Source: Entomortierella parvispora E1425 (lineage: Eukaryota; Fungi; Mortierellomycota). From it: a stretch of DNA of 64,000 nucleotides. Positions 23,858-35,740 of this stretch are shown here, in pieces. Position 1 is the first letter of the stretch; each line of letters starts with the position of its first letter. The notes under the pieces were generated by a model. That model had not been told where the DNA came from and ran no database searches. It saw only the letters and a program-made list of their open reading frames with translations. The translations under genes were made by a program, and so were the position numbers. The DNA is taken from the NCBI GenBank assembly GCA_020891255.1, contig BQFW01000012.1:62001-126000 (forward strand). The letters are read 5' to 3'.

Positions 23858-23929
23858 TCCTAGTTGGTCCAGTGGTCAGGATTTGTCGCTCTCACCGACA
23901 AGGCCCGGGTTCGATCCCCGGACTGGGAA
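23858..23929 (+). tRNA. tRNA-Glu (anticodon CTC), copy 1
   Basis: 72 nt; acceptor stem TCCTAGT/ACTGGGA; anticodon arm TGTCG-CT-CTC-AC-CGACA; T-loop GGTTCGATCC; TTTT terminator just downstream. Confidence 0.95.
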
Positions 23930-23964
23930 CTCATCTTTTGCCCCGGCGTACCTGGGAGCTGAGA

Positions 23965-23973
23965 CGATCATTT
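23965..23973. repeat. Left target-site duplication CGATCATTT
   Basis: Identical 9-mer at 33584-33592 immediately outside the other TIR. Confidence 0.9.
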
Positions 23974-24023
23974 GGATTTATCTATTTGACAACCCAGGTT
24001 GTTCGTTTTGTTTGACAACCCAC
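23974..24023 (+). repeat. Left terminal inverted repeat
   Basis: GGATTTATCTATTTGACAACCCAGGTTGTTCGTTTTGTTTGACAACCCAC matches the reverse complement of 33534-33583 at 46/50 positions. Confidence 0.9.
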
Positions 24024-24129
24024 CAGTCACACTTTGGAAAATTGCATGGAAACCTGGGTTGTCAGATAGTGAGCTCCACCTCGTTCGCAACAAGCCCGCA
24101 AACCCGAAGTTGCCGCCCGAAACCGCCTC

Positions 24130-24668
24130 CATGGTACCAGCCATCGGACACGGCTTTGTGGACATCATTGTACTCTGCCTTCCATGACTCGCCAACGACC
24201 TGTCCTCCTGTGAGGGGACAGATCACCAGCCCGTTGGCACCAGCCCCGTTGGCATCGGCTCAGTCGGTCGTCACTGCCTACCAAGGAGTGTTACACTGCG
24301 CTTCGATCAAGGCCTGGACTCCAATTATTAAAGGCCCTCACTCGGTCGTGGTCGCAGTTGCTCATCAACTTATCCGTCGTCAGGATAGGGATACTCTTGC
24401 ACGTATCCGGAAGACACGCGGCGAGGTTACTATTGCCTGGGAGAAGACTCAAGGCATCCGCTCCAAGATGAAGAAGCAAGCACAGCGAGGCCAACCTTGG
24501 AACAATGCATTTGCTACGATCTTACCACCAGACACCTGCCAATGCGGTAAACCTCACTCCGGCCACCACCAAGGCCGTTGCCCAGATGCCCAAGATGACC
24601 TTAAGCTGGCAGACCAGCGCTTACTGGCTGGTGTGCGTGGCCAGGTTCATATATCGACACTTTTGTAA
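24130..24668 (+). pseudogene. Open frame without a usable start codon, ending in a Cys/His cluster (CQCGKPHSGHHQGRC); possible cargo gene fragment
   Basis: About 180 stop-free codons inside the element, with no in-frame Met until near the end. No family recognised. Confidence 0.3.
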
Positions 24669-24916
24669 CATTTTATTCTTTATTAAACAGCGATGAGTCG
24701 TGGCATTTGTTGCGCGGGGATTCGGGCTTCATTGTTAGTAGTTTGTTCTCGCACTTCGCTTCACTGTCTCGACATAGCAAATAATATGTAAAAAAAAAAA
24801 AAGTCCACCTCGTCCGCCATAGCATCAGAAGATATTTCGCAAGAATATTTTTATTGAATAATTGCGAACATAACCTGTTACACTTCGTCGACGTGGGATT
24901 GCGCACTATCTGTCTT

Positions 24917-25770
24917 TCACATGTCCTCGTCGTCCTGGCAGGGGCTGACCATGTAAGATGGGTCACTCTGAAGGCCTTTGAGTGCTCGCTCGCTGACTTC
25001 CAACGTGAAAGATCGATCGCGCTTGAGTGACATGAGGTTTCTAACCTCGTCCCTTGTAAGCTTCTGCTCGGCCATTATCTCTGCTTGATTGTTTTGATGG
25101 CGATTGTAGAACACTCTCTGTTCCTCAACAGCTGCTCGCTGCATCTCAATGGCAGCTCGCTGCTCCTCGAGGGCCGTGCGCTGCTCCTCTAAGGCCAAGC
25201 GGTTATGTTCAGCGATGCTGCGCTGATGTGCCACAGCTTGTTCAGCATACGAAGCGGTGAAGGTGTTCAGAAACGACAACTGAGACTGGGTCATGCTCTC
25301 GACGAGCTTCGCGCTCTGTCCTGTGAACGTCTCCAGGAAGGCTTGATGTTGCTCAATCAACTTTTCCTCCAGAATGCTCCCCGACGCTGCGCTCCGCTAC
25401 CACCAGGGCCGTTGAAGGAGGCGCCGGCGCAACAATAACGCCATTGCCATCGCCTGCACCACCTGCACCAGGGAGGAGGTGGATGTGCGATTGCATTTAG
25501 GGCGGCGTCCCTGGCAACGGCACAGTAATGGTAATGGCGATGGATCGAAGAGTTAAGGGTGAACGTCAGGCCACAGTAGCAGACGAAATCCATGTGTTTT
25601 GTGGGAATTCGACTAAAGGTGACTTGTCGATCAGTGTACCCGCACATGAACTTGATGGGGTTGTCGACGTGATACCCTGCAACATGGTTCTTCTGATTTT
25701 TGGTCTTGGGTTCGGCAGGGGGGAGGAGACCTAGCGCGCAATAGCCGTAAGTGCAAGCACCACGAGGCAT
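24917..25770 (-). pseudogene. Element-borne Zn-finger plus coiled-coil protein (about 283 aa), interrupted by two apparent +1 frameshifts
   Basis: MPRGACTYGYC...FVCYCGLTFTLNSSIHRHYHYC (C-x-C...H-x3-C). Removing one C in CCTCCCTGG and one G in GTCGGGGAG joins it to the coiled-coil ORF (LEEQRTALEEQRAAIEMQRAAVEEQR). The span is 854 nt, and 852 nt is a whole number of codons. Confidence 0.65.
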
Positions 25771-25928
25771 GTTGGAAGAGGTGAGAACGATGAGGAGGAC
25801 AAGATACAGAACTGGATGCCGCAAGTACACATATTTATACATGTGGGAGTTGCTGACACAAGAAGCCTGGATGTACGAGTCAGTCGAGTCAGTCCCTTTG
25901 TTTCGAACCAGAAGAACATGTCGGACCA

Positions 25929-28900
25929 TCATCCTCTATGACCTAGGGGATGTCTGTCAATGGCATGCATACAGAGGGCAAAATGTATCTTTTTTTCTTT
26001 TGGCCGACCATGGTACACGTACCGTCTTGCGAGTCCTTGCGAGTCGCCAGAAGTCCCAATTAGGAATGGTCTACTGTTGCATGCAAAGGCTTTTTTTTTA
26101 TTTGACCGAGGGTTGACCGGGGGTAGATCAATACAAGAGGAAAGAAACACAGCTGATACCCGCTCCAGTCTTCTGATCCAGACAAGGTCAGAGCCCACTG
26201 GACTATCATCCTCTATGACCGAGGGGATGTCTGTCAATTGCATGCATACAGAAGGCAAAATGTATCTTTTTTTTTCTTTTGGCCGACCATGGTACACGTA
26301 CCGTCTTGCGAGTCCTTGCGAGTCGCCAGAAGTCCCAATTAGGAATGGTCTACTGTTGCATGCAAAGGATTTTTTTTTTTATTTGACCGAGGGTTGACCG
26401 GGGGTAGATCAATACAAGAGGAAAGAAACACAGCTGATACCCGCTCCAGTCTTCCGGACCGGACAAGGTCAGAGCCCACTGGACTGTCACCCTCTATGAC
26501 CTAGGGGATGTCTGTCAATTGCATGCATACAGAAGGCAAAATGCACTTTTTTTTTTCTTTTGGCCGATCATGGTACACGTACCGTCTTGCGAGTCCTTGC
26601 GAGTCGCCAGAAGTCCCAATTAGGAATGGTCTACTCTTGCATGCAGAGGATTTTTTTTTATTTGACCGAGGGTTGACCGGGGGTAGATCAATACAAGAGG
26701 AAAGAAACACAGCTGATACCCGCTCCAGTCTTCCGGACCGGACAAGGTCAGAGCTCACTGGACTATCATCCTCTATGACCTAGGGGATGTCTGCCAATTG
26801 CATGCATACAGAAGGCAAAATGCACTTTTTTTTTTCTTTTGGCCGATCATGGTACACATACCGTCTTGCGAGTCCTTGCGAGTCGCCAGAAGTCCCAATT
26901 AGGAATGGTCTACTCTTGCATGCAGAGGTTTTTTTTTTTTTTTTTTTGACTGAGGGTTGACCGGGGGTAGATCAATACCAGAGGAAAGAAACACGGCTGA
27001 TACCCGCTCCAGTCTTCCGGACCGGACAAGGTCAGAGCTCACTGGACTATCACCCTCCATGACTTAGAGGATGCCTGTCAATTGCATGCATACAGAAGGC
27101 AAAATGCACTTTTTTTTTCTTTTGGCCGACCATGGTACACATACCGTCTTGCGAGTCCTTGCGAGTCGCCAGAAGTCCCAATTAGGAATGGTCTACTGTT
27201 GCATGCAAAGGCTTTTTTTTTTTATTTGACCGAGGGTTGACCGGGGGTAGATCAATACAAGAGGAAAGAAAACACAGCTGATACCCGCTCCAGTCTTCCG
27301 GACCGGACAAGGTCAGAGCTCACTGGACTATCATCCTCTATGACCTAGGGGATGCCTGTCAATTGCATGCATACAGAAGGCAAAATGCACTTTTTTTTTT
27401 CTTTTGGCCGATCATGGTACACATACCGTCTTGCGAGTCCTTGCGAGTCGCCAGAAGTCCCAATTAGGAATGGTCTACTCTTGCATGCAGAGGTTTTTTT
27501 TTTTTTTTTTTTGACTGAGGGTTGACCGGGGGTAGATCAATACCAGAGGAAAGAAACACGGCTGATACCCGCTCCAGTCTTCCGGACCGGACAAGGTCAG
27601 AGCCCACTGGACTATCACCCTCTATGACCTAGGGGATGTCTGTCAATTGCATGCATACAGAAGGCAAAATGCACTTTTTTTTTTCTTTTGGCCGATCATG
27701 GTACACGTACCGTCTTGCGAGTCCTTGCGAGTCGCCAGAAGTCCCAATTAGGAATGGTCTACTCTTGCATGCAGAGGATTTTTTTTTATTTGACCGAGGG
27801 TTGACCGGGGGTAGATCAATACAAGAGGAAAGAAACACAGCTGATACCCGCTCCAGTCTTCCGGACCGGACAAGGTCAGAGCTCACTGGACTATCATCCT
27901 CTATGACCTAGGGGATGCCTGTCAATTGCATGCATACAGAAGGCAAAATGCACTTTTTTTTTTCTTTTGGCCGATCATGGTACACATACCGTCTTGCGAG
28001 TCCTTGCGAGTCGCCAGAAGTCCCAATTAGGAATGGTCTACTCTTGCATGCAGAGGTTTTTTTTTTTTTTTTTTGACTGAGGGTTGACCGGGGGTAGATC
28101 AATACCAGAGGAAAGAAACACGGCTGATACCCGCTCCAGTCTTCCGGACCGGACAAGGTCAGAGCTCACTGGACTATCACCCTCCATGACTTAGAGGATG
28201 CCTGTCAATTGCATGCATACAGAAGGCAAAATGCACTTTTTTTTTTCTTTTGGCCGACCATGGTACACATACCGTCTTGCGAGTCCTTGCGAGTCGCCAG
28301 AAGTCCCAATTAGGAATGGTCTACTGTTGCATGCAAAGGCTTTTTTTTTTTATTTGACCGAGGGTTGACCGGGGGTAGATCAATACAAGAGGAAAGAAAC
28401 ACAGCTGATACCCGCTCCAGTCTTCCGGACCGGACAAGGTCAGAGCCCACTGGACTATCACCCTCTATGACCTAGGGGATGTCTGTCAATTGCATGCATA
28501 CAGAAGGCAAAATGCACTTTTTTTTTTCTTTTGGCCGATCATGGTACACGTACCGTCTTGCGAGTCCTTGCGAGTCGCCAGAAGTCCCAATTAGGAATGG
28601 TCTACTCTTGCATGCAGAGGATTTTTTTTTATTTGACCGAGGGTTGACCGGGGGTAGATCAATACAAGAGGAAAGAAACACAGCTGATACCCGCTCCAGT
28701 CTTCCGGACCGGACAAGGTCAGAGCCCACTGGACTATCACCCTCTATGACCTAGGGGATGTCTGTCAATTGCATGCATACAGAAGGCAAAATGCACTTTT
28801 TTTTTTCTTTTGGCCGACCATGGTACACATACCGTCTTGCGAGTCCTTGCGAGTCGCCAGAAGTCCCAATTAGGAATGGTCTACTCTTGCATGCAGAGGT

Positions 28901-29110
28901 TTTTTTTTTTTTTTTTTGACTGAGGGTTGACCGGGGGTAGATCAATACCAGAGGAAAGAAACACGGCTGATACCCGCTCCAGTCTTCCGGACCGGACAAG
29001 GTCAGAGCTCACTGGACTATCACCCTCCATGACTTAGAGGATGCCTGTCAATTGCATGCATACAGAAGGCAAAATGGATCTTTTTTTTTTTTTGGCCGAC
29101 TATGGTACAT
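25929..29110. repeat. Tandem array of ~281-bp units, 11 full copies plus a partial 12th, with higher-order variant pattern
   Basis: Marker CATGGTACAC at 26009, 26288, 26569, 26848, 27131, 27413, 27697, 27976, 28259, 28540 and 28819, with a degenerate copy at 29101. Spacing is 279-284, varying with poly-T length. Confidence 0.97.
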
Positions 29111-29365
29111 ATATGGTATATACACATAGACTGCAAATAGTGTTCGGGGTTTTGAGTTACTCTACTCGAAGCGGAGACAATGAAACGTTGGAACTTCTGA
29201 TATAAAGCTACGGCAGTAGGCACCGACGAAGATTCACAAGAATCTTATAACCTCAGCCGAGCCATACTTCTCTGTACGGGGTTTGTTGTCTGTCTCGTAC
29301 CTACTGAAGTTCTTTGGAGCGTTTTGCTGATACAGTCTATTTTGGCATTTAAAAAAAAATATAGG

Positions 29366-30819
29366 ATGTCGTCAGCTGTTAATCATCTTGTGGACGACCC
29401 AGGGACGTCGAAAGAATCGAAAGTGATGTACAGCCAATACTGGCAAAGGCTACAAACTGGCAAGGCACTGCTGAAAATCCCCCTTCCGATTACTAAAACT
29501 TGTACCGAGGTCGAGGTCATATATGAGCTGCCACCGCCCAAAGAGAGAATATTCGAAGCCAGAGTTGCAATTCTCAAAACGCTACCTTCGCAAGATGTTG
29601 TTATGAAGGCCAACGAAATGCTGCGTAGGTTCAATAAGAGAAAACATCGGCTGCTCTTTTCGTTTAGGTGTCAATTGGCAAAACTCCTGACCAGCACAGT
29701 TACAATATGTTTATTTATAGTTGGTGCGTCAGTGTCTCAAAAGGCGTGGGGCATTCGCATCCATGGCGTTGGAGATTTCTCGCATGCCTCGGTCAAAATC
29801 TTACTCGGCGCGGTGCAGACGCACACTTTCATCATTCAAGCGATGGAGATGTTTAACTGGATCGATGCCGTCTCGGATCGCAACTTTGCCGATTGGATCC
29901 GCGACCTAATTTCCAATACCTCAGGCATCATCCATTGGGAGTTTCAGCCAACTTCTGAGGCGCCATTGGCCATTGGAAACGCGTTTTGTCTCATGAAGGA
30001 GTGCTTCATTAATGACGAGGTCGTGCGCACGGTGTTGCAGCTCTTTGCCGAGTCGTATGGGGCAAGCAATCGATACCTTTTGATCACACCTACTCAACTC
30101 AACAACTGGCGAAAGAATCTATACCTGGAATGGAAAAGGGACGAGCTCCGAAGCGGGCGAGTTGAAAAGGCATTCTCGATTGTTTATATGCCATCTCATT
30201 GGGGTGCGATCGAGGTCGATTTCGTTAAATGTCAGATCTCATTTGGGGATTCCCTCTCTTATCCCACACCTCGTGAGGCCTGTCAAGCGATACGACAATG
30301 GATAAGATGCTGTGGGCTTGATATAGATCGTTGGAGCAGCCACATCGAGCATCTCGATGTCCCACGGCAACCAGCTAGCAGTGGATCGTGCGCTGTCAAC
30401 TCCATCAATGCTGTCGAGAGGAGAATGAATCCTGAAATAGAACTCTGGACTCACGAACGATCTGCACATCATCGATTGAGGCTTTTGAAGCTGGCCACCG
30501 GCTACAACAAGGTGAATCTTTGCTTGTTTGTAACGTATGACACAAATCCCCCGTTGTCCGACCACCGTAGATTAATACTCAATTCATCTAGATCGAACAT
30601 GCAGCACATGCTTCTCGAGGCCAAGGGGTGGCAAGGGTGGCTGATCTCGATATTGTGTCGGCAAATGATCCGGACATAGTTACAACTGACTCAATCATCA
30701 CAGACAACGCCATTGTAAAAGTCGCAGTCAATGAAGAGATACCTACCGAAGATGGGGTCACTACAGCTGTAGCCGATGCGGCTATTCTAGAGAGACCATT
30801 ACAAGTGATGCTTTCTTAA
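29366..30819 (+). CDS. Ulp1-like (C48) SUMO/ubiquitin-like protease carried by the MULE; N-terminus probably extends to an upstream exon
   Basis: CFINDEVV, PSHWGAIEVD (catalytic His), FGDSL (Asp) and PRQPASSGSCAV (Gln and Cys) in Ulp1 order. Inferred intron ~30512-30590. Confidence 0.8.
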
Positions 30820-33445
30820 ATGTCGGACCCTCTTCATGTGGGGCCAGGGCAGAGGCAGCGGCCGCCGCCGTAACCATTACAAGTGATGCTCTTGCAGCTG
30901 ACGGACCCTCTTCATGTGGGGCCAGGGCAGAGGTAGCGGCTGCCGCCATAGCCATCACAGGCAACAGTGCTGAAGAGGGTGACAGCCTGCCGTGGACACC
31001 TTATATCGGCCAGTTGCATGAAACTCTTGAAGAACTAGAAGAAAAACTCCACGCATGGGCTCGCAAGCAAGGATTTTTCCTGAGAAGGATGCAGTCCAGA
31101 CTCAAGAGGATGAATGGCCAAAGTCCCCGAGGTAGGTACTTAAAATCTGCAGGTTGTTTTTTTTTTCTCTATGGATCAATTCTTTTTGACACAAGTATGG
31201 TTTGCCGATGAATAGTAATTTTTGGTTGCAAGAAGGCTGGAAAACATGTTCCGCAAAAGAATGTTGACCCAGATAAGCACCGCAATTGCACCTCCAGCCG
31301 CGAGTGCTGCCCATGCCAAATCGTTGTTCGGTCTCCAAGGGAGTTGTTTCCACGTTGGCGTATTACTTCCCTTGTCACAGACCACTGCCACGAACTCAAG
31401 AAATGCGACATCCTGGAGTCCAACCAGCGTGATAAACGACTCAGTGCCGAAATGCTCCAGCTTATTACCACCCATGCAGGCAAATGTGATCCCAAGTTTA
31501 TTGTTTACATGCTTCAACATGAATGGCCAGACAAAGCGTTCGATCTTCGGACAGTCGCAAATGCCATCCAGAAAGCAAAAAACAGTGCTCACATCGGTGG
31601 CTCCGAGGCTGCAGAGCTCCACAAGATTCTACAGGATAAAACGCGCAACGATAAAGACTGGTTCTTTGCTACCGATCTGGATGAAAATGGCCGGCTCAGA
31701 AGGATGTTCTGGATGAGCCCTTCTCAAAGATACCTCTACCGACGCTACCGCGATGTTGTCATCAGCGATAACACTTACAAGACGAACCGTTTCGGCATGC
31801 CTCTTAATGTTATAGTCATTATCGACAATGCAGGAAAGAGTCGTTTGGTAGGGTGTTCATTGGTTTCTGGGGAATCAGTGGAGGACTATGAGTGGATTCT
31901 AGAGCAACTGTTGGCGGCAAGCGACAACGTATATCCTCATATCATTTTCGTCGACGAAGATCCCGCTATGGAGGCCGCTTGTGCCACAACTATAAGCAAG
32001 ACCACCGTCTTGAACTGTATCTGGCATCTGCGACAAAACCTGAACAAAAACCTCCACGGAGCGCTAGGCAAAGACTGGAATGATTTTATATCAGCTTTTT
32101 GGACAACCCGAAACGCGCTTACGGCCTCCGATTTTGAGCGTAGATGGTCAGAGCATGTTGCGGTCTTTGGTGTTGATAAGCCAAAGATTGAGGGTTACCT
32201 GAAAAGGATAAGCGAGAAGCGCGAGCACTGGGCTTGGCCTTGGGTTGGGACAAGATTTACCGCCGGAATGCAGTCGACTCAGCGTGTGGAGAGTATGAAT
32301 GCGGCCATCAAAAGGGCCGTCAATGGCAAGACGTCCCTTCCAGCACTGTTCGAGGCAATTGAAAAGAAGCTATCAAATGAAGCCCAGACTTCAAAGTATA
32401 TTCTCTACAAGACGGATACAACGGTTGATCCCGCAACGTCGACGTTTGTTCAGCAAATGTTTGCCGATGTTATCGATGCAAACAATCGCTATCTTGGCAT
32501 CGCAGCAAAAAGTCAGATGAAGTTAGAGATGTCGCGCTCTGTTTTGTATCAGTCCAATCCACACACAGGTATAGACGCCTGTGCTCCACGATCAATCGAA
32601 GGAGGTGATTTCGAGGAAGTAAGTACTTGTACATCATTCCAATACCCAAGCGCAATCCTAAGACCAGATAGAGGTACTAAGCCGTTATTCTTCTCTTTGT
32701 CCTTAGATTGAGAGATCGTCAAAAGACGATCGCGAAATGAGCTCTCTCCAGTCCATCCAGACAATCGTTGGTTCTGATCGAATTGTACAAATCTTCGACG
32801 TGACGTTCCGCTTGGACACGGAGCGAAAGTCACTTCAGCACATACTTTTACTGGCTGATGGCTCGTACATTTGTACTTGCCTCCTCCCTCCAAAACAGCG
32901 GATTTGTATGTCGACACTATTTCCATCTGATGCAAGTTAGTGACAGATGCAAGTATCATGTCAGGCTTATTCCGATGCGGTGGTTTAAAGAAGAACTGCA
33001 GGACCTAACAGATCTTGATCTCTCAGGGGCGTTTTTGAGCGCAAAAACGCAGAAGACGGTCGCTCAGGTGGGGAGTGCAGAGGGAGAGCCTGCTTCTTCT
33101 TTCATGAGCGATATCATGAAGGTTTTCCCCTCAGTGCCATCCCTGTCGGGGGTTGATAAACGCAACCTTTCCAAAAAACGCCGCATTGGAGAGATATCTG
33201 GCCTGATGAAGAATATCATGGACACCGTGAACTCCAATCCAGAAGTATTCGAAACAGTTAAAGATGGCCTAAACCGTGTCATTGTGAGGGGGGCAGGCGA
33301 AGAAGGTATGAAGGATCCTCACTATACAAAGACGAAGGGCAGACCGAGGACTTCTCGGATAAAGAGTAGCATGGAGACAAAAAAAAAATCAACGAAGTGT
33401 GGAGTGTGCAGCGGGGAAGGTCACAATTCTAGACAGCACTCATAA
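30790..33445 (+). CDS. MULE transposase (FAR1-type DNA-binding domain, DDE core, SWIM finger, C-terminal CCHC knuckle); one apparent +1 frameshift in the SWIM finger
   Basis: HAWARKQGF|RVIFGCKKAG...RECCPCQI...DHCHEL; ISDNTYKTNRFGMPL, IFVDEDPAM, LNCIWHL, STQRVESMN; YICTCLL/LQNSGFVCRH; KCGVCSGEGHNSRQH. No clear own ATG was found. Confidence 0.9.
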
Positions 33446-33533
33446 AAATAAACGTTTGTTTGGCAACCTGGGTTGTCAATTGAGGAATGACAGGTGGGTT
33501 GCCGAATAAAAAACGAGACTAACCAAATATAGA

Positions 33534-33583
33534 GTGGGTTGTCAGGTAAAACGAACAACCTGGGTTGTCAAATAGATAAACCC
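33534..33583 (-). repeat. Right terminal inverted repeat
   Basis: Reverse complement GGGTTTATCTATTTGACAACCCAGGTTGTTCGTTTTACCTGACAACCCAC. Confidence 0.9.
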
Positions 33584-33592
33584 CGATCATTT
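33584..33592. repeat. Right target-site duplication CGATCATTT
   Basis: Identical to 23965-23973. Confidence 0.9.
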
Positions 33593-33881: not shown

Positions 33882-34028
33882 GAGCGACCAATTTGCGACC
33901 AAGTTTTGCGACCAAGTTTTGATGTTTGAAAAGAAGTTGGTCGTTTCTCCTTAAATGGGCCTTGAAAGCTGGTCGCAAACCAGGAAAGGAAACTTGGTCG
34001 CAAAACTTGGTCGCAAATTTCGTCGCTC
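33882..34028. repeat. 147-bp segment with ~38-bp imperfect inverted arms built from TTGCGACCAAGTT subrepeats (MITE-like)
   Basis: Left arm GAGCGACCAATTTGCGACCAAGTTTTGCGACCAAGTTT versus reverse complement of right arm GAGCGACGAAATTTGCGACCAAGTTTTGCGACCAAGTTT. Confidence 0.75.
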
Positions 34029-35290: not shown

Positions 35291-35668
35291 AGATTTTTTT
35301 TTTCCAGAGTTGGTGGTTGTGAACTGTCGCCAGGTTTGGAATGGATGGTGAATGAAAAACGAAGGCGTGCACTCCCAGGGGAAAATAAAGTTACATTGAT
35401 TTTGTGCGACTGAATGGGAAACCAAGATAGTTGACAAAAAATCAATTATTTTGGAATTGATGATGGGAGAGTGAGAGGTGCAGTTGAGGCCTCGGGCCCA
35501 GGCGTTGATCCCATCCTCACGAAAAGAAAGGTCAAGAGCAGAGTGTTGAGCGTGCCTCTGAGTGAGCAGAAGTTTTGAAGGCTCCGAGAACAAAAAAAAA
35601 GAGTGCTGATCAAAGAAAGGCAGAGTAAAATGATCACCCAGCCTCGGTAGGCCGGGGCAAAAGATGAG

Positions 35669-35740
35669 TTCCCAGTCCGGGGATCGAACCCGGGCCTTGT
35701 CGGTGAGAGCGACAAATCCTGACCACTGGACCAACTAGGA
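35669..35740 (-). tRNA. tRNA-Glu (CTC), copy 2
   Basis: Reverse complement identical to copy 1 body. Confidence 0.95.

Follow-up and report, generated by a model that had tools for sequence, protein, structure and literature searches.

In the reviews consulted, integration beside transfer RNA (tRNA) genes is described for yeast and dictyostelid retrotransposons, and placement downstream of these genes for the dictyostelid elements only (PMC5911963, PMC5006619). In Dictyostelium, TRE3 inserts 40-150 bp and Skipper-2/DGLT-P 8-23 bp or about 140 bp downstream of tRNA genes, a safe haven in a compact genome (PMC5911963), and the Dada elements, the only tRNA-associated DNA transposons met with in the literature searched, are linked to tRNA and small nuclear RNA genes (PMC3706591). 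Here we describe a Mutator-like element (MULE) at positions 23974-33583 of a 64,000-nt stretch (the window) of contig BQFW01000012.1 from the soil fungus Entomortierella parvispora E1425, the recovered copies of which lie just downstream of tRNA genes. Whereas TRE3 and Skipper-2 are amoebal, RNA-mediated elements, this one is a fungal cut-and-paste transposon that inserts in either orientation and encodes unrelated proteins; and whereas Dada has a transposase superfamily of its own and uses specific sites inside RNA genes, the MULE sits outside the gene, past its terminator, and next to many tRNA species. Targeting of tRNA flanks is a new result here, found elsewhere reported for retrotransposons only: a full-text literature search returned no cut-and-paste element with this preference, absence there being no proof. 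A MULE that settles immediately past tRNA genes, as seen in three Mortierellaceae genera, would represent an independent, convergent solution reached by a DDE cut-and-paste element.

Within its own superfamily the element invites comparison with three groups. VANDAL21/Hiun of Arabidopsis, with the transposase VANA, VANB and the anti-silencing factor VANC, is similar in carrying extra coding capacity and non-coding tandem repeats (PMC5735166), and an earlier note on this DNA had built on that likeness. VANA, VANB and VANC are separate, however, whereas only two genes are present here, with the protease fused to the transposase; clear terminal inverted repeats (TIRs), a single 3.2-kb satellite unseen in relatives, and tRNA targeting further set the fungal element apart. 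VANC carries DUF1985/DUF287 (PMC5735166), whereas the accessory protein described below is of C2H2-like zinc-finger/coiled-coil type and those domains were not found in it. The premise of the note that VANB is Ulp1-like could not be confirmed from the same paper, which describes VANB simply as an open reading frame (ORF) and nowhere mentions Ulp1. Ulp1 domains do occur in plant and animal MULEs: a CE-clan protease accompanies a DDE transposase in plant KI-MULEs, in MuDR elements of hydra and lancelet and, as a C-terminal Ulp1/OTU domain, in Ginger1 (PMC2836005). The present lineage differs in being fungal (Mortierellaceae), in having the protease N-terminal to a FAR1-MULE-SWIM transposase, and in a protease sequence too divergent for PF02902. 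Maize MuDR (mudrA and mudrB) and Yarrowia Mutyl (MudrA and MudrB) are likewise two-gene autonomous MULEs with 9-bp target site duplications (TSDs) and a second gene of unassigned function (PMC5014426), but here the genes diverge from a central satellite and the choice of target is different.

Taken together, the data are probably best read as a young MULE family composed of two divergent units, a fusion transposase and an accessory gene, that inserts downstream of tRNA genes through tethering to the RNA polymerase III (Pol III) apparatus.

Element boundaries and insertion sites

The termini of the element lie at 23974 and 33583, exactly where the earlier note had placed them. An inverted-repeat comparison yields a 57-nt match (88%) between 23967-24023 and 33534-33590 that takes in part of the TSD, and the TIRs proper are 50 nt long (23974-24023 and 33534-33583). 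The 9-bp TSD, CGATCATTT, flanks the element as a direct repeat at 23965-23973 and 33584-33592 and is present as a single copy in a paralogous empty site. As a proxy for the latter serves a second tRNA-Glu(CTC) gene with a related, unoccupied downstream flank on the minus strand (35560-35740, the tRNA gene itself occupying 35668-35740), where the sequences bordering the element on its left and right run together across one GATCATTT; the same empty-site sequence was also found as a loose end in Illumina contigs. The motif GGGTTGTCA occurs six times as an exact copy in the window, in each case no more than about 115 nt from an element end: at 23987-23995(-), 24013-24021(-) and 24056-24064(+) on the left, and at 33470-33478, 33536-33544 and 33562-33570, all (+), on the right. 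With its TIRs, 9-bp TSD and MULE-type DDE domain the element belongs to the MULE/MuDR superfamily.

The neighbouring tRNA-Glu(CTC) gene at 23858-23930 (plus strand; ARAGORN, with an Rfam RF00005 match of 58 bits) ends 43 nt before the element and 34 nt before the TSD. This arrangement is the rule. Genomic copies were gathered by exact-protein look-ups (L001 and L003-L011; n=10), L006 being the copy in the window (100% identical), and tRNA genes were located with ARAGORN. In every one of the ten, 24-69 nt separate the element from the 3' end of a tRNA gene upstream of it, and the TSD starts 15-60 nt after that end, so that the insertions fall outside intact tRNA genes, on one side, within a 46-nt span and past the first Pol III terminator T-run. 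The ten tRNA genes represent nine types, namely Glu(CTC), Gln, Pro (two loci), Ile(TAT), Tyr, Val, Glu(TTC), Cys and Ile(AAT), and orientation is free, the transposase end facing the tRNA gene in seven copies and the other end in three. With 192 nuclear tRNA genes in a genome of 38.66 Mb, the chance of such a position is 2.3e-4 for a single insertion and about 4e-37 for all ten; a 200-nt window still gives 1e-30.

The same placement is seen in relatives, the loci of which often sit on contigs ending inside the element. In Mortierella polycephala, tRNA-Arg is followed after 112 nt by a homologous terminus. In Linnemannia elongata, a 430-bp miniature inverted-repeat transposable element (MITE) with homologous termini (...GGGTTGTCAAATAGGTTAACCC) and a 9-bp TSD, TCGTCTTTT, lies about 85-93 nt downstream of tRNA-Pro, and a second copy, 96% identical to it, follows another tRNA-Pro at a distance of about 74 nt and is next to a degraded MULE. 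Insertions are thus confined to a narrow window by many tRNA species, and the pattern recurs in relatives from two other genera. The L. elongata interval is of interest in another respect as well: a second, unrelated element with 254-nt TIRs at 97% (L014:13127-17273) shares with the MULE remnant the same 12.5 kb between two inverted tRNA-Pro gene pairs.

The ten copies are 99.85-100% identical and have the same termini, each with its own A/T-rich 9-bp TSD in a different flank. Only 0-2 substitutions separate them in 6.4 kb of unique sequence, and the remaining differences are almost all 1-nt homopolymer indels; L001 is an internally deleted derivative of 4.6 kb, and L009 has four array units fewer. 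Illumina contigs of the same strain, used for checking indels and for estimating copy number, have a depth of 708-953 across the element against about 75 on the single-copy flank, which points to about nine full-length copies plus two or three deleted ones. The family is therefore very young and probably still active. Nine further runs with the same species label (X3-X11) contain next to none of the sampled words of the element, and X3, the largest of them, covers the tRNA only; the family may thus be missing from other isolates and may have arrived recently in E1425.

The E1425 assembly was produced from Nanopore reads with SMARTdenovo and polished with Pilon (PMC8759367). Compared with the Illumina data, the window has surplus bases at 25379, 25471, 29351 and 32886 (C) and lacks a G after 30791, and 100% of the same-strain Illumina contig depth speaks against each homopolymer indel of the window. 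Genuine frameshifts in the copies were considered and rejected, the indels being homopolymeric, partly in phylogenetic conflict and absent from the Illumina depth. Since the apparent frameshifts are assembly artefacts, essentially every copy retains two intact genes, and the two single-base insertions that the earlier note had seen in its third gene (25379, 25471) are errors of this kind. Residual 1-nt homopolymer indels thus outlast polishing in the multicopy DNA of GCA_020891255.1, and over the ten copies the annotated models for one and the same sequence span 125-337 aa for the accessory gene and 239-1,164 aa for the transposase. Users of the assembly should treat frameshifts in its repeats with caution, as polishing artefacts.

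The fusion transposase and its Ulp1-like domain

The rightward gene encodes a protein of 1,243 aa (29366-33445, plus strand), defined by a spliced RNA contig, the Illumina indel calls and an ORF that is continuous once corrected. Its exons are 29366-29624, 29721-30509, 30590-31129, 31214-32618 and 32707-33445, and the four introns (29625-29720, 30510-30589, 31130-31213 and 32619-32706) are all of GT..AG type. The RNA evidence comes from run X2 of the same sample, which is RNA-seq, as its spliced contigs with GT..AG joints, TruSeq adaptor ends and uncovered tRNA and flanks indicate; a label of "DNA?" for this run was rejected on these grounds. A spliced contig of 3,355 nt covers 29721-33366, the joint 29624/29721 (GT..AG) is taken from the joint table, and from the ATG at 29366 to the stop at 33443-33445 the frame is uninterrupted after intron removal and two Illumina corrections (30791, 32886). 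Because one spliced contig unites the Ulp1-like ORF with the transposase, the element has two genes, not three. The earlier note had proposed a three-gene element; the transposase, the Ulp1-like domain and the opposite-strand gene are all there, but the Ulp1-like part is the N-terminus of the transposase. A fused model of 1,164 aa is already annotated in two copies, and the order Ulp1-like domain, repeat linker, transposase recurs in L012, a distant relative with about 50-60% protein identity.

The N-terminal region (29366-30509) contains an Ulp1/SENP-like CE-clan protease domain, recognized by profile and fold. It is followed by an in-frame coding repeat of 78 bp x 2.1 (30795-30959) that is part of the linker joining the protease to the DNA-binding domain, a position occupied by other repeats in relatives. 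The transposase proper (30980-33445), delimited by Pfam and motif positions, consists of a FAR1/WRKY-GCM1-type DNA-binding region, the MULE catalytic domain (about 31755-32040), a SWIM domain (about 32860-32935) and a C-terminal CxxC..H knuckle. Pfam matches to PF10551 (E=5.2e-20) and PF00872 (E=1.8e-5) bear out the Mutator transposase that the earlier note had recognized, and the annotated models carry precomputed PF03101/PF21056/PF10551 assignments along with FAR1 and ZSWIM RNaseH-like families.

Two minor RNA observations concern this gene. In the long RNA contig one 78-bp unit is missing (30792-30873) and three other letters stand at the joint, reflecting either copy-number variation among copies or collapse during RNA assembly. 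Another RNA contig (depth 29) jumps 249 nt within 29336-29586 with CT..AC ends, equivalent to a minus-strand GT..AG intron, which points to an antisense spliced transcript running across the start codon of the fusion gene toward the array.

The Ulp1-like ORF gives no Pfam match even at E<=10, the gathering score of PF02902 not being reached, and the protease assignment therefore rests on profile and fold. Among nine aligned Mortierellaceae homologs, the motif HWG...(17)...GDSL...Q...C is invariant in the eight that span it, with a Q-to-C spacing of 7. A profile built from the nine matches SENP1 (E=3.6e-5) and Ulp1 (E=0.033) and brings the catalytic His, Asp, Gln and Cys into register; the candidate catalytic residues of the fusion protein are His246, Asp263, Gln303 and Cys310. 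In an AlphaFold2 model the domain has a predicted local distance difference test score (pLDDT) of 80-95, and Foldseek against the PDB returns SENP5, SENP2, Ulp1, SENP1 and NEDP1 at E values of 1e-7 to 1e-6 and a probability of 1.0, with template modelling (TM) scores by target of up to 0.73. These sequence comparisons and the model speak for a protease domain of the CE clan (C48) that is divergent but has an intact predicted active site. Of the claim that the element encodes an Ulp1-like SUMO (small ubiquitin-like modifier) protease, the CE-clan fold and the catalytic residues thus hold up, and the separate gene does not.

The accessory gene and the tandem array

The second gene runs in the opposite direction. 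Its coding sequence (CDS; 24917-25770, minus strand) specifies a protein of 283 aa (P0002, identical to EMPS_02794 in another copy), as protein match, RNA, alignment and model together indicate, and its transcript extends over 24808-25815 by the limits of RNA contig coverage in run X2; a minus-strand TATAAATA box precedes the start of coverage by about 30 nt. An annotated N-extended model of 337 aa was rejected, since RNA coverage begins at about 25815, downstream of its ATG. The summed RNA depth of the accessory transcript is 1e5-2.5e5 against 48 for the fusion transcript, a difference of three orders of magnitude.

A full HMMER scan recovered 61 homologs of the accessory protein, the named ones from Linnemannia, Dissophora, Mortierella and Entomortierella. 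The protein has two zinc modules (C6/C11/H29/H34 and C64/C66/H79/C83), and all eight ligands are nearly invariant in 36-39 homologs. In its model (pLDDT 86), a disordered linker joins a compact head of two fingers to a helix of 139 residues. Comparison with the closest relative gives a ratio of nonsynonymous to synonymous divergence (dN/dS) of 0.27, and comparison with L. elongata one of 0.21, dS being close to saturation; the ratio was limited to these closer pairs, as dS is saturated in more distant ones. Neither piece of the gene has a Pfam match even at E<=10, and Foldseek against the PDB gives none at E<=0.001; a fold search of AlphaFold database clusters returned weak C2H2-type matches (E 0.02-0.1), none of them VANC-like, and a feature search of the ESM atlas weak C2H2 leads (score 0.85). 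Most likely, the protein binds DNA or chromatin as a dimer and serves the element as a helper or regulator.

Linkage to the transposase is kept outside E. parvispora. In L. elongata (L014) a homolog lies divergent beside a degraded Ulp1-like-MULE gene, with a spacer of 1.07 kb, and on a soil-metagenome contig (L022) a homolog lies 313 nt from a transposase fragment; a metagenome scan with an eight-sequence alignment led to one locus. In the M. polycephala relative, the Ulp1-like ATG stands 340 nt past the homologous terminus (GGGTTAATCTATTCGTCAATC), with neither accessory gene nor array at that end. Judged from these comparisons, the accessory family is conserved in Mortierellaceae and appears to travel with this MULE lineage. 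The opposite-strand zinc-finger/coiled-coil gene of the earlier note is accordingly real, being intact, transcribed and conserved, and the suspicion that it might be a captured host fragment without purifying selection does not agree with a dN/dS of about 0.2-0.3, the retained zinc ligands and the linkage in L. elongata.

Two further observations bear on this gene family. A 218-aa paralog of the accessory protein in E. parvispora, EMPS_02200 (L020:9457-10657, BQFW01000003.1; 38% identity), stands alone, with neither a transposase nor an Ulp1-like gene within 10 kb. It is found downstream of tRNA-Ser(AGA), at a distance of 463 nt, and may be what is left of a reduced element, or else a domesticated or ancestral host copy. 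Within 23974-24862, a 919-nt RNA contig (depth 87) carries six substitutions specific to L001 and reaches the very end of the element, which suggests read-through of the accessory transcript from that copy.

Between the two divergent promoters lies the 3.2-kb tandem array (25923-29113), confirmed in extent and position and consisting of 11.4 units of 281 bp (period 279-284, 94% matches) that fall into three subtypes in a loose A-B-C order. The array has no match in Rfam, the terminal motif GGGTTGTCA was not found in it, and its unit has no similarity to the promoter-proximal and subterminal DNA of the element or, beyond poly-T, to the intergenic DNA of relatives, nor do arrays share a common short motif. 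The intergenic spacer of L. elongata has a repeat of 108 bp x 2.2 in place of the large array, and the spacer of the soil relative measures 313 nt; a supposed repeat upstream of the Linnemannia gamsii homolog proved to be a CT-rich microsatellite and was discarded. Among the identical young copies, array copy number is simply inherited. Most likely, the array is a lineage-specific expansion of a shared intergenic control region and not an essential, conserved part of the element.

Proposed tethering and competing explanations

Pol III tethering is favoured over sequence recognition or post-insertion selection because the target window is narrow and one-sided, the tRNAs are varied, orientation is free and divergence between copies is near zero. 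Under tethering, the transposase complex would be held on the 3' side of tRNA genes by protein-protein contact with the transcription factor TFIIIC or with terminating Pol III and would then choose a nearby T-rich 9-mer, and insertion beside tRNA genes would offer a safe haven in a compact 38.7-Mb genome. As to the part that makes the contact, one may tentatively suppose, without holding it to be likely, that the N-terminal Ulp1-like domain docks on SUMO-modified Pol III or TFIIIC, so that the element would land 15-60 nt past the tRNA gene. The domain is the preferred tether because it is common to every tRNA-adjacent relative, including the one without an accessory gene at the end seen. Yeast tRNA genes carry SUMO, the E3 ligase Siz1 and sumoylated Rpc53, and SUMO is found at mammalian tRNA genes too (PMC6128692). 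If docking of this kind were true, it would be the first function for transposon-borne Ulp1 domains, in the first known tRNA-flank-targeting DNA transposon, and would offer a concrete function for the Ulp1-like domains of MULE and Ginger transposases, a role for which has so far been suggested only (PMC2836005). The system is also compact enough for dissection, with a fusion transposase, a small accessory protein, 50-nt ends, a 4.6-kb non-autonomous derivative and a 430-bp MITE.

Several points weigh against this interpretation. The SUMO-tether idea is based on yeast and mammalian literature and on the presence of the domain; no report of tRNA targeting by Ulp1-domain MULEs was found in the literature searched, and the domain alone therefore need not confer targeting. 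The M. polycephala element is cut by the end of its contig, and an accessory gene could sit beyond the transposase. The tRNA association is inferred from fixed copies, about one or two of which were not recovered, and the contigs of three relatives (L012, L013 and L022) have no tRNA on the side present, the other side being off the contig. The RNA depths quoted above are summed contig depths from a single library and give a rough measure of expression.

An alternative to contact through the Ulp1-like domain, improbable but deserving attention, is that the accessory protein itself acts as a target selector, binding TFIIIC/Pol III or tRNA-gene DNA and recruiting the transposase as the selectors of Tn7 do. 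A conserved, probably dimeric protein with very high RNA depth and a C2H2-like head suited to binding DNA or protein would fit such a task, its gene accompanies the tRNA-associated lineage in two genera, and even the stand-alone paralog lies downstream of tRNA-Ser. However, the M. polycephala relative is tRNA-adjacent, yet its Ulp1-transposase gene directly follows the terminus, and fold searches revealed no similarity of the accessory protein to known Pol III factors or target selectors.

Less probable again is the VANDAL-like anti-silencing system proposed in the earlier note, in which the zinc-finger protein would bind the 281-bp array and open chromatin while the protease strips SUMO from heterochromatin factors. 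An accessory protein of DNA-binding type beside non-coding tandem repeats does recall the targets of VANC (PMC5735166), the accessory gene has a very high RNA depth and the transposase gene of this multicopy family is transcribed, and a small tandem repeat (108 bp x 2.2) occupies the corresponding intergenic site in L. elongata. On the other side, Pfam and Foldseek found no VANC-type domain or fold, the protease belongs to the transposase, the array is missing or unrelated in relatives, one of which is without the accessory gene at the end seen, and arrays lack a common short motif, their copy number being merely inherited among identical copies. The zinc-finger gene, the array and the Ulp1-like domain were expected to occur together in relatives; instead, the large array is confined to E. 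parvispora and is not kept elsewhere, but the gene stays linked to the MULE in L. elongata and the soil contig. These comparative data oppose a conserved protein-array pair, and anti-silencing appears weakly disfavoured.

It is very improbable that targeting is absent altogether, with insertion into any open A/T-rich DNA and survival of the harmless tRNA-flank copies under selection, for although TSDs are A/T-rich and frequently homopolymeric, the genome is compact (11,641 CDS in 38.7 Mb) and plant MULEs favour open chromatin near gene starts, copies separated by 0-2 substitutions in 6.4 kb have had little time for neutral intergenic insertions to be purged, and all ten are crowded into 46 nt on a single side of the tRNA gene, with the same side and range in two other genera.

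Some features of the surroundings may be added. The Rfam scan of the window yielded three tRNAs and nothing else. Beyond the right end of the element, at a distance of 300 nt (33884-34019), a 13-bp tandem unit, GCGACCAAGTTTT, builds up a perfect inverted repeat of 30 nt with arms 70 nt apart. Near two of the relatives, on unrelated contigs, large DUF6589 genes of 808 and 1,253 aa (L012:6853-9279 and L021:3180-6941) lie a few kb away and may represent another mobile element family.

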